A stretch of DNA of 32,746 nucleotides from Guillardia theta CCMP2712. Its lineage: Eukaryota; Protista; Cryptophyta. The notes beneath the pieces were generated by a model. That model was not told where the DNA came from. It saw only the letters and a program-made list of their open reading frames with translations, and ran no database searches. Below, in pieces: positions 1-4,571 of the stretch (positions are counted from its first letter, which is position 1; each line of letters begins with the position of its first letter). A program made the translations under genes and the position numbers. Where the stretch lies: the NCBI RefSeq assembly GCF_000315625.1, contig NW_005434476.1, positions 16,108 to 48,853 on the forward strand, read 5' to 3'.

Positions 1-57
1 TGCCCCTGCCCCTGCCCCTGCCCCTGCCCCTGCTCCTGCTCCTGCTCCTGCTCCTGC
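1..57. repeat. (TGCCCC)n/(TGCTCC)n hexamer microsatellite, probably intronic
   Basis: Direct tandem hexamers; the same units fill introns elsewhere in the window (about 3920-4058, 8326-8380). Confidence 0.9.
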
Positions 58-600
58 TACCACCATTTTACTCTCCTTGTCGCCACCTCGCCGTCAGCTG
101 GAGTCTGTCCGGCCGGCTGAGTACTGCCCGGCATCAGTTGTGCGCAAAGTGATGGGGATGAGTGGGGATGGGGGCCATAGATATACATAAAAGGAATTTC
201 ATGGCAGGGGTGCAGGATCGGGGAGTGGGAGAGGAGGAGGACGAGGAGGAAAAGGACGAGGACGAGGAGAGAGTAGAGAGGAGGACGAGGACGAGGACGA
301 GGACGAGGAAGAGGAAGAGGAAGAGGAAGAGGAGGACGACGAGGACGAGGACGAGGACGACGAGGAGGAGGAGGAGGCGCGGAGGGGGTCAGGAGGAGGT
401 GGTGGTGGTGGTGCGATGAGGATGGGAAATCCTGTACGGTCAAATTAGGAAGAGGATGGAGCAGGGATGGAAGGAGAGACTGATAGGGAATGGGAAGTGA
501 ACAAGCGAAAGCAGCAGGGCAGAGCTGATCGGATTGAAGAAGAGGAGGAGCCGCTGGATGCTGAATTTGTATTAACAGAAAGAAGAGCGGGAGGGCTGTC

Positions 601-2118
601 ATGGGGAAGTACCTCGTTCATCTCCTCTCTATCCTCCTCGTTTTCCCTTCCGCCTTCGGTTTCAGCTCTTTCCCTCCGTCGCTGGCCTCACGCCCTGGGA
701 TCGACCTAGCGTCTCATCGCGCAACCACCAGCTTCTCTTCCTCTTCCTCTTCCTCTTCCTCTTCCTCCCTCCATGTTCTTCGCCAAACCCCCTCGTCCTC
801 GGTCTTCGAGTCCTCCCTTGAGCCCGGGCAGCAGAGCAAGCCGAGGCCTTGGAAACTCCTGCACATTGTGGAGCTCGCGAACAAGACGAGCGCCATGGGC
901 TGGGCGTCAGCCCGGGAGGACAGCGTGGGAGCGAGGGACAGGGACGGGACGTGGGTGCTGAAGAACGAGGAAGCGATGGAAGAGCTGAAGGCGGCGATGA
1001 AGGCGGCGATCCCCTACGCTCCCTCCTGGTCTTGGATCAACCAGTCGCCAACGGCACTAGAGGTGACGGTGGAGGAGACGGAGGGGGCGGAGGTAAAGCT
1101 GCTGTTCCTTCCTCCCGGTCAGTCTCTCCCTCCCTTTGAGTACCCGACCGGCACCGTCGTCCTGCTCAAGACGCTCTTCGGTCGCTGCGACGTGCGGCAG
1201 ATGCTCGGAAACCCTCGAGGACGCGCGCCGATGCGGGAGGCGGTGAGGACGGCGGTATCGGAAGAGGAAGTGTCCTTATACCTCGGAGGACCCTGCCGGA
1301 TTTACGGGGAAGCAACTCTGGAGAAGTCATGCTGCGTGCTAGAGGTAGCGCTGATCCCAGCGCTCAAGATCACAGGCATGCACGGGTTCGTGGAGGAGGA
1401 GAGCTACGGGCCTCTACCCTCCTCCCTCCTCCTCGACCGGCGGCACATGGAGAGTCTCCTGACTGCTCCAGGGTTCCCCGGGTATGAGGAGATGAGAGGA
1501 GGGAGAGGAGAGGTTGGAGCAGAGGAGGAGGAGGAGGAGGGAGAGTCGTCGAGAGACATCTCATCGGTGGACCTGGAGGGGCTAAGGACGAGGATCGGAG
1601 GGCTGGAGGAGGAGCTTGAGGCGATCGTGAGGAGGGCGTTTGCGACGAGGAGGCTACCGAGGGAGGCGATGAGAAGGTTGGGGGTCAGCCACGTGAAGGG
1701 GATGCTGCTCTACGGCCCTCCAGGGTGCGGGAAGACGCTGATAGCGCGGGAGATCGGGAAGCTGCTGAAAGCTCGCCCGCCTAAGATCGTCAACGGGCCC
1801 GAGGTGCTAGACAAGTGGGTGGGGGAGGCAGAGAGGAACATCCGGTCGCTCTTCTATGAGGTGAGGGGAGGAGCATGGAGGGTGGGGAGGGAGAAGGGAG
1901 ATAGGGAGGAGGAGCAGGAGCAAGAGGAGGCAGGAGGAAGGAGGCAGGAGGCAGGAGGCAGGAGGCAGGAGGCAGGAGGCAGGAGGCAGGAGGCAGGGAC
2001 GGCTGACATGTTGGGTCAGGCAGAGAACGAGTGGCAGGAGTTGGGCGACAAGTCGGCCCTGCATCTCATCATCTTCGATGAGTTTGATGCCATTGCGAAA
2101 CCTCGTGGGATGTTGCGG
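601..2118 (+). CDS. NSF/Sec18-like AAA+ ATPase with signal peptide, Ser-rich transit peptide and N-terminal degenerate ADO/PCO-like cupin; 3' end lost in gap
   Basis: Exons 601-1860 and 2020-2118 (intron 1861-2019 GT..ctgac..AG; next donor 2119). Walker [27 protein letters not shown]-typical [25 protein letters not shown], Walker [14 protein letters not shown]-terminus [24 protein letters not shown]. Confidence 0.85.
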
Positions 2119-2219
2119 GTGAGGAGGAGGAGGAGGGGAGGGGGGGGGGGGGGGGAGGGAGGGAGGGAGGGAGGAGGACCCGGGGGGAGGGGGGGAGGGA
2201 GGAGGGCCGGGAGGGGGGA

Positions 2220-3075
2220 NNNNNNNNNNNNNNNNNNNNNNNNNNNNNNNNNNNNNNNNNNNNNNNNNNNNNNNNNNNNNNNNNNNNNNNNNNNNNNNNN
2301 NNNNNNNNNNNNNNNNNNNNNNNNNNNNNNNNNNNNNNNNNNNNNNNNNNNNNNNNNNNNNNNNNNNNNNNNNNNNNNNNNNNNNNNNNNNNNNNNNNNN
2401 NNNNNNNNNNNNNNNNNNNNNNNNNNNNNNNNNNNNNNNNNNNNNNNNNNNNNNNNNNNNNNNNNNNNNNNNNNNNNNNNNNNNNNNNNNNNNNNNNNNN
2501 NNNNNNNNNNNNNNNNNNNNNNNNNNNNNNNNNNNNNNNNNNNNNNNNNNNNNNNNNNNNNNNNNNNNNNNNNNNNNNNNNNNNNNNNNNNNNNNNNNNN
2601 NNNNNNNNNNNNNNNNNNNNNNNNNNNNNNNNNNNNNNNNNNNNNNNNNNNNNNNNNNNNNNNNNNNNNNNNNNNNNNNNNNNNNNNNNNNNNNNNNNNN
2701 NNNNNNNNNNNNNNNNNNNNNNNNNNNNNNNNNNNNNNNNNNNNNNNNNNNNNNNNNNNNNNNNNNNNNNNNNNNNNNNNNNNNNNNNNNNNNNNNNNNN
2801 NNNNNNNNNNNNNNNNNNNNNNNNNNNNNNNNNNNNNNNNNNNNNNNNNNNNNNNNNNNNNNNNNNNNNNNNNNNNNNNNNNNNNNNNNNNNNNNNNNNN
2901 NNNNNNNNNNNNNNNNNNNNNNNNNNNNNNNNNNNNNNNNNNNNNNNNNNNNNNNNNNNNNNNNNNNNNNNNNNNNNNNNNNNNNNNNNNNNNNNNNNNN
3001 NNNNNNNNNNNNNNNNNNNNNNNNNNNNNNNNNNNNNNNNNNNNNNNNNNNNNNNNNNNNNNNNNNNNNNNNNNN
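2220..3075. other. Assembly gap (N run)
   Basis: 856 N. Confidence 1.

Positions 3076-4571
<1,496 letters not shown>

Follow-up and report, generated by a model that had tools for sequence, protein, structure and literature searches.

A probable plastid-imported, NSF-derived AAA ATPase with a thiol-dioxygenase-like head in Guillardia theta and other algae with four-membrane plastids

The cryptophyte Guillardia theta CCMP2712 probably possesses a nuclear-encoded, plastid-imported, single-ring AAA+ protein-remodelling ATPase that is derived from NSF and carries a pseudo-dioxygenase head. Its gene lies in a stretch of 32,746 nucleotides (the window), which is scaffold C198, positions 16108-48853, of the 87-Mb G. 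theta assembly. The open reading frame starting at window position 601 corresponds to GenBank XP_005819959 / EKX32979, annotated as 'N-ethylmaleimide-sensitive factor A' ('NSF A'; entry P0001, 489 residues). A preliminary description made from the DNA letters had proposed an NSF paralog with a plastid leader at this position. In canonical NSF, the N-domain binds SNAP-SNARE complexes, the D1 domain follows, and D2 is the oligomerization domain. Here we describe a protein with a plastid-type leader in front, a cupin fold resembling that of the plant cysteine oxidases (PCO) and human ADO in place of the N-domain, a D1-type AAA module with intact motifs, and no D2.

The second member of the 90%-identity cluster of P0001 is P0121, a cDNA-derived protein of 614 residues encoded on L017, an intronless JGI transcript contig of 1882 nt. 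In local BLAST, L017 bases 1-1284 match window positions 578-1861 and bases 1282-1383 match positions 2018-2119, both at 100% identity; the overhangs of 1-3 bases at the exon ends reflect junction ambiguity. Exon 1 ends at 1860 (GT at 1861), and position 2118, at which the preliminary description had closed the feature, is a true exon end (GT at 2119); the transcript thus confirms the predicted splice sites. The L017 reading frame begins at the ATG at 601, after a 23-nt 5' untranslated region (UTR) without an upstream ATG. Because the contig begins upstream of this ATG, the leader is transcribed; the transcript does not start downstream of it. The exons were searched separately, and the spliced protein used here is the stored entry P0121. 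The features of the gene, numbered by window position, are as follows.

578..600, + strand: 5' UTR, as far as L017 reaches (L017 bases 1-23, 100% match)
601..660, + strand: predicted signal peptide, residues 1-20, ending SAFG (Kyte-Doolittle, (-3,-1) site, model helix 3-14)
661..846, + strand: transit-peptide-like region, residues 21-82, first residue Phe21 (composition, pLDDT <50)
847..1470, + strand: PCO/ADO thiol-dioxygenase-like cupin, residues 83-290, His triad not conserved (AF2, Foldseek, VIA, profile)
1471..1560, + strand: acidic, disordered Glu-rich linker, residues 291-320 (pLDDT <50 for residues 303-319)
1561..1860, + strand: NSF-D1-type AAA module, first part, to the end of exon 1 (PF00004, NSF D1 alignment)
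1714-1737, + strand: Walker A, GPPGCGKT
1813-1827, + strand: pore loop, KWVGE
1861..2019, + strand: intron 1, GT..AG, holding a 10-bp repeat (missing from L017)
2020..2118, + strand: exon 2, residues 421-453, with the NSF-type insert and Walker B (100% match to L017)
2068-2082, + strand: Walker B, IIFDE
2119..2219, + strand: first part of intron 2, opening with GT and continuing as about 100 nt of low-complexity, G-rich sequence (the cDNA departs from the genome after 2118)
2220..3075, no strand: assembly gap of 856 N, which must contain the codons for residues 454-614, the stop and the first part of the 3' UTR

The last 499 nt of the cDNA (L017 bases 1384-1882) have no match elsewhere in the window, and no other locus for the C-terminal half of the protein was found in the 87-Mb assembly, so that a further copy of this 3' part was rejected; residues 454-614 are therefore encoded inside the gap. 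The GenBank terminal exon of XP_005819959/P0001 (3330-3436, + strand) has no counterpart in L017 or P0121 and was likewise rejected. It is an artefact, and the 3' end of the reference model is incorrect. In P0121 a single AAA module with its lid is followed by only a short tail, and D2 is absent, as the preliminary description had anticipated in judging that a D2 probably does not fit the gap if the stated gap size is real. An identity as canonical N-D1-D2 NSF was rejected, the cDNA protein consisting of leader, cupin and a single D1.

The AAA module begins near residue 320, and its best PDB matches are the D1 domains of NSF and Sec18. As a single domain, residues 310-614 of P0121 give 299-305 bits with the D1 of NSF and Sec18, while the 306 bits reached by VAT are a two-domain sum (160 + 149), with VAT D1, of the next family, at about 160. 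Aligned with NSF D1, the module is collinear (54-60% identity) and shares the NSF-type insert that precedes Walker B. In a maximum-likelihood tree of 78 rows (LG+C20 PMSF), the proteins of this architecture (the family) and NSF D1 form a clade with 100/100 support and canonical NSF receives 100/99, values that are rough, the ultrafast bootstrap not having fully settled at the end of the search. The canonical NSF of G. theta is a separate gene on scaffold C5 and clusters with the canonical NSFs. Pelagophyte-type members of the family (785-850 residues) have C-terminal stretches of 260-310 residues that align to NSF D2 (hhalign 99.6%, E 9e-25) with a degenerate Walker A, reading GAGAT. This D2 remnant is seen only by profile-profile comparison; a phmmer search of the PDB with the C-terminal extension of P0045 gave no match. 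The domain scores, the tree clade and the degenerate D2 of the relatives together support descent of the AAA module from NSF, and the assignment to the NSF D1 type and the status of NSF paralog, both put forward in the preliminary description, are upheld by them.

The motor appears intact. Among 23 diverse family members, K378 (Walker A), D440 and E441 (Walker B), R498 and R501 (arginine fingers), G408 (pore loop) and R561 (lid) are invariant (23/23), and the pore-loop aromatic residue is W, F or Y. The features of classical-clade AAA+ unfoldases (Walker A/B, arginine fingers and an aromatic-hydrophobic-Gly pore loop) are thus invariant or conservatively substituted in these members. In the full-length model, the AAA module and lid are confidently predicted and are followed by two short C-terminal helices, the last of which is basic. 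A short Arg/Lys-rich C-terminal helix is found in many, though not all, members (P0121, P0003, P0005, P0011, P0019, P0150 and others), and could be a membrane-binding or ring-stabilizing element.

The NSF N-domain, noted in the preliminary description as not recognizable, is indeed missing: a Pfam scan of the protein detected neither PF02359 nor PF02933, and a cupin occupies its place. Residues 83-290, modelled by AF2 with 25 homologues, give a confident cupin fold (pLDDT 88.6), for which the best Foldseek matches are plant cysteine oxidases (PCO4) and human ADO (E 2e-10). VIA-align Z values are 14.9 for PCO4, 14.8 for ADO, 11-12 for other thiol dioxygenases and at most 8.9 for generic cupins, and an ESM Atlas fold search together with a feature search gave the same PCO/ADO-type result. 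A profile of the family N-domain run against the PDB retrieved PCO4 from sequence alone (E 1.1e-9); Pfam PF07847 against a single sequence remained below the cut-off (E 0.15 and 0.0047).

The specificity of this match (Z of about 15, versus at most 9 for generic cupins, and the PCO4 profile E-value just given) would fit a cupin that is still enzymatic, as a thiol dioxygenase or another metal-dependent enzyme that couples client oxidation to unfolding, and some members retain His at the third iron-ligand position, which aligns mostly to Arg in the family. The remaining ligand positions argue against such an enzyme. The H-N-H motif of PCO4 aligns to variable, mostly non-His positions across 25 family members. 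In the profile alignment, the G. theta residues at the three ligand positions are Glu, Pro and Arg; when the register is shifted by one residue, the H-x-H positions are occupied by Phe and Tyr, and no His is present in either register. We therefore regard catalysis by this domain as highly improbable, and the cupin is in all likelihood a pseudo-enzyme.

The cupin appears to be essentially specific to the fusion with the AAA module. Its profile found only 315 matches in 1.84 billion representative proteins. Where 120 or more residues follow the domain, 51/58 matches contain the AAA module. Of the remaining seven, P0233 is unclear; the other six reach the opening part of the AAA module, after which the gene model is interrupted or loses the frame. 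The short cupin matches might have pointed to a PCO enzyme family that stands alone, but this reading was rejected, those inspected being fragments or frame-shifted models, several of which end at VGGL, the motif that opens the AAA module. When a cryptophyte cupin domain was used by itself in a word search, all the sequences retrieved were cryptophyte-like. Two proteins, P0304 (861 residues) and P0305 (790 residues), have two tandem PCO-like cupins before the AAA module.

The precursor most likely carries a bipartite plastid leader, consisting of a signal peptide and a transit-peptide-like stretch that starts with Phe, and this leader argues against a cytosolic location. Residues 1-20 contain a hydrophobic core (best 9-residue Kyte-Doolittle mean of 2.7) and are followed by a single (-3,-1)-compatible cleavage site, between SAFG and FSSF, which puts Phe21 at position +1. 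Residues 21-80 contain 23 Ser, 3 Thr, 3 Arg and 1 Lys versus 1 Asp and 2 Glu, and are net basic; residues 15-81 are disordered in the full-length model (pLDDT <50). The hydrophobic signal peptide ending in SAFG, the Phe and the Ser-rich stretch listed in the preliminary description are all recovered, and our own heuristic does predict a signal peptide. This heuristic (a hydrophobic h-region, a small(-3,-1) site and the +1 residue) was applied to 186 N-terminally complete family members and to 80 NSF/Cdc48 controls. An h-region was found in 147/186 family members versus 16/80 controls. Among the sequences with an h-region, a small(-3,-1) site followed by F/Y/W was present in 100/147 family members versus 1/16 controls, and one followed by F/Y/W/L in 128/147 versus 3/16, the rows of these counts not being independent of one another.

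In complex red plastids, F/Y/W/L at the transit peptide's +1 site marks plastid proteins, while periplastid proteins lack it (PMC12136025); the G. theta protein has Phe21 at this position, and because of it, by the published rule, a placement on the stromal side is predicted. The diatom Phaeodactylum probably has a member of the family as well. Phatr2a_36682, labelled vesicle-fusing ATPase (KEGG K06027), has a signal peptide with cleavage between IHA and FSG and is rated 'Plastid, high confidence' by ASAFind 2, and canonical NSF in the diatom is encoded by another gene, 20641 (PMC12136025, Appendix S6). The assignment of Phatr2a_36682 to the family is based on the KEGG label and the leader.

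A leader that is a signal peptide only would make the protein a luminal AAA ATPase of the endoplasmic reticulum (ER) or secretory pathway, similar to torsins. The clear hydrophobic N-terminus and cleavage site would suit such a location, and the transit-peptide character of residues 21-82 is read from composition and disorder only. A Ser-rich, net-basic, disordered spacer of about 60 residues with an initial aromatic residue nevertheless recurs across the family, and the likely diatom counterpart is placed in the plastid by ASAFind 2 (PMC12136025). An ER-luminal location is accordingly considered very unlikely.

Algae whose plastids have four membranes seem to have conserved the same design. 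The named members belong to the cryptophyte Guillardia, the haptophytes Prymnesium and Scyphosphaera, the diatoms Seminavis, Fistulifera, Cylindrotheca, Thalassiosira and Epithemia, and other ochrophytes including Aureococcus, Chrysophaeum (two paralogues), Mallomonas, Tribonema, Ectocarpus, Laminaria, Phaeothamnion and Chrysoparadoxa. The chlorarachniophytes Bigelowiella, Norrisiella and Gymnochlora are also represented. Among the named matches, which are a minority of all matches, none comes from primary-plastid algae, plants, alveolates or plastid-lacking organisms. The chlorarachniophyte proteins P0306, P0307 and P0308 (Norrisiella, Gymnochlora and Bigelowiella) contain the fusion of cupin and NSF D1 together with an N-terminal extension, in organisms whose plastid is of green origin. 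Two further proteins that closely resemble the Norrisiella protein, P0012 and P0150, adjoin canonical NSF in the tree with moderate support (91/92).

This distribution also bears on the possibility that the protein resides in the space between membranes 2 and 3, the periplastid compartment, and acts there in the manner of NSF on unrecognized fusion machinery, for example in the vesicular network of that compartment. The named matches are confined to algae that have a periplastid compartment, chlorarachniophytes included; the protein descends from NSF; and another Cdc48-family ATPase, sCdc48 of SELMA, already works there (PMC5070193). The SNAP-binding N-domain is gone, however, and the +1 residue is Phe in G. 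theta and F/Y/W/L in most relatives, a residue that periplastid proteins lack (PMC12136025). We consider a periplastid NSF-like function unlikely, and prefer a plastid-imported remodelling ATPase with a client other than SNAREs.

Several points weigh against this preferred reading. The location of the G. theta protein is a prediction, in which the stromal, rather than merely plastid, site is a further inferred step; the signal peptide is predicted by a home-made heuristic; the rule on the +1 aromatic residue is a statistical one and inapplicable to chlorarachniophytes, which also have the family; and the membership of Phatr2a_36682 is putative. Ring formation in a protein that lacks D2, the oligomerization domain of NSF, is likewise predicted only. 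Transcript support consists of one stored contig plus word shares in a sequencing-run index (best share 0.84 versus an exonic share of 0.85 of the queried stretch) from runs that are only guessed to be RNA. With Cdc48 and other AAA domains as the root, the tree shows the family as a grade around NSF and not as a clean sister group. The grade shape is biologically unlikely and is probably a long-branch effect; a monophyly constraint on the family is not rejected (p-AU 0.178).

Compared with NSF and Sec18, the family shares a D1-type AAA module with intact ATPase motifs and, in some members, a degenerate D2. It differs in the cupin that replaces the N-domain, the absence of D2 in G. theta, the plastid leader, and a pore-loop Trp in place of Tyr, and it falls outside the canonical NSF clade, which holds G. 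theta's own scaffold C5 NSF. The SELMA sCdc48 provides a precedent, being a nucleus-encoded Cdc48-family AAA ATPase with a signal-peptide leader that was redeployed to the complex plastid (PMC5070193). The two nevertheless differ: sCdc48 retains N-D1-D2, works in the periplastid compartment and originates from red-algal ERAD (ER-associated degradation), whereas the present family is NSF-derived and mostly single-ring, has an aromatic residue at +1 and is found in chlorarachniophytes as well. With PCO and human ADO, which are N-terminal cysteine dioxygenases, the N-domain shares the fold and detectable sequence homology, but the iron-binding histidines are not conserved and the domain occurs joined to an AAA motor, almost always so where the sequence suffices to tell. 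ClpC with ClpS and the Ycf2-FtsHi import motor of green plastids are stromal ring ATPases that grip substrates with pore loops and have separate domains or adaptors to choose clients. The likeness to these systems is one of analogy only, as they belong to other AAA+ clades, show no specific sequence kinship and lack a cupin.

From these comparisons a mechanism can be proposed. The precursor would enter the ER route and then cross the periplastid and envelope membranes, ending on the stromal side of the complex plastid; this is the path that the bipartite leader makes most likely. The mature protein would then form a ring, hydrolyse ATP and pull a polypeptide through its pore, as expected because Walker A/B, the arginine fingers, the sensor residues and the aromatic-Val-Gly pore loop are all present. 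The PCO/ADO-type cupin would stand in for the SNAP-SNARE-binding N-domain, D2 having been lost in G. theta. Because the three iron-binding histidines are lost, the cupin most likely works without catalysis, as a module that recognizes either a peptide (possibly the N-terminus of a protein) or an adaptor. PCO and ADO bind protein N-termini, which makes recognition of N-terminal peptides by the cupin an attractive hypothesis. The protein would thus be an unfoldase or disassemblase whose client is picked by a pseudo-thiol-dioxygenase head and not through SNAP and SNAREs.

To our knowledge, it is unclear which motor serves the inner-membrane import and quality-control steps in algae with complex plastids. 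As a speculation to which we attach little probability, the family might be an unrecognized component of complex-plastid biogenesis, shared by red- and green-derived four-membrane plastids, in which the head recognizes the N-termini of incoming or misassembled proteins and the motor pulls on them during import or quality control at the inner membranes.

In the surroundings of the gene, minus-strand, coding-looking frames of a convergent orientation enter the gap (about 3077-3226, 3300-3440, 3680-3830 and 4070-4200, within window positions 3077-4200). They are set apart by long Ser/Pro/Leu low-complexity runs, and Pfam scans of these frames past the gap gave nothing usable. Long microsatellites of hexanucleotide type, namely (CCCCTG)n, (GAGGAC)n, (GAG)n and (GCAGGA)n, lie on either side of the gene at window positions 1-60, 240-400, 3230-3290 and 3900-4060. 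Microsatellite-like sequence adjoins the assembly gap and may have caused it.

Among the papers searched, none describes this family or architecture, XP_005819959 or Phatr 36682. Existing annotations of family members read NSF, vesicle-fusing ATPase or generic AAA protein, and the databases mislabel the whole family as 'vesicle-fusing ATPase'. New beyond the preliminary description are the identification of the N-domain as a PCO/ADO-type cupin without the iron triad, a range extending beyond cryptophytes and diatoms, and the spurious GenBank 3' exon. NSF is usually described as a near-universal singleton acting on SNAREs (PMC5070193). The family described here would be an offshoot of NSF in which the adaptor-binding head was exchanged for a dead thiol-dioxygenase fold, the second ring was mostly shed and a plastid leader was gained. 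Since a probable counterpart exists in Phaeodactylum, it offers a tractable candidate for unexplained protein handling in complex plastids. The motor motifs have been kept intact across cryptophytes, haptophytes, ochrophytes and chlorarachniophytes, which points to a real, as yet unassigned job for the protein in these ecologically dominant algae.
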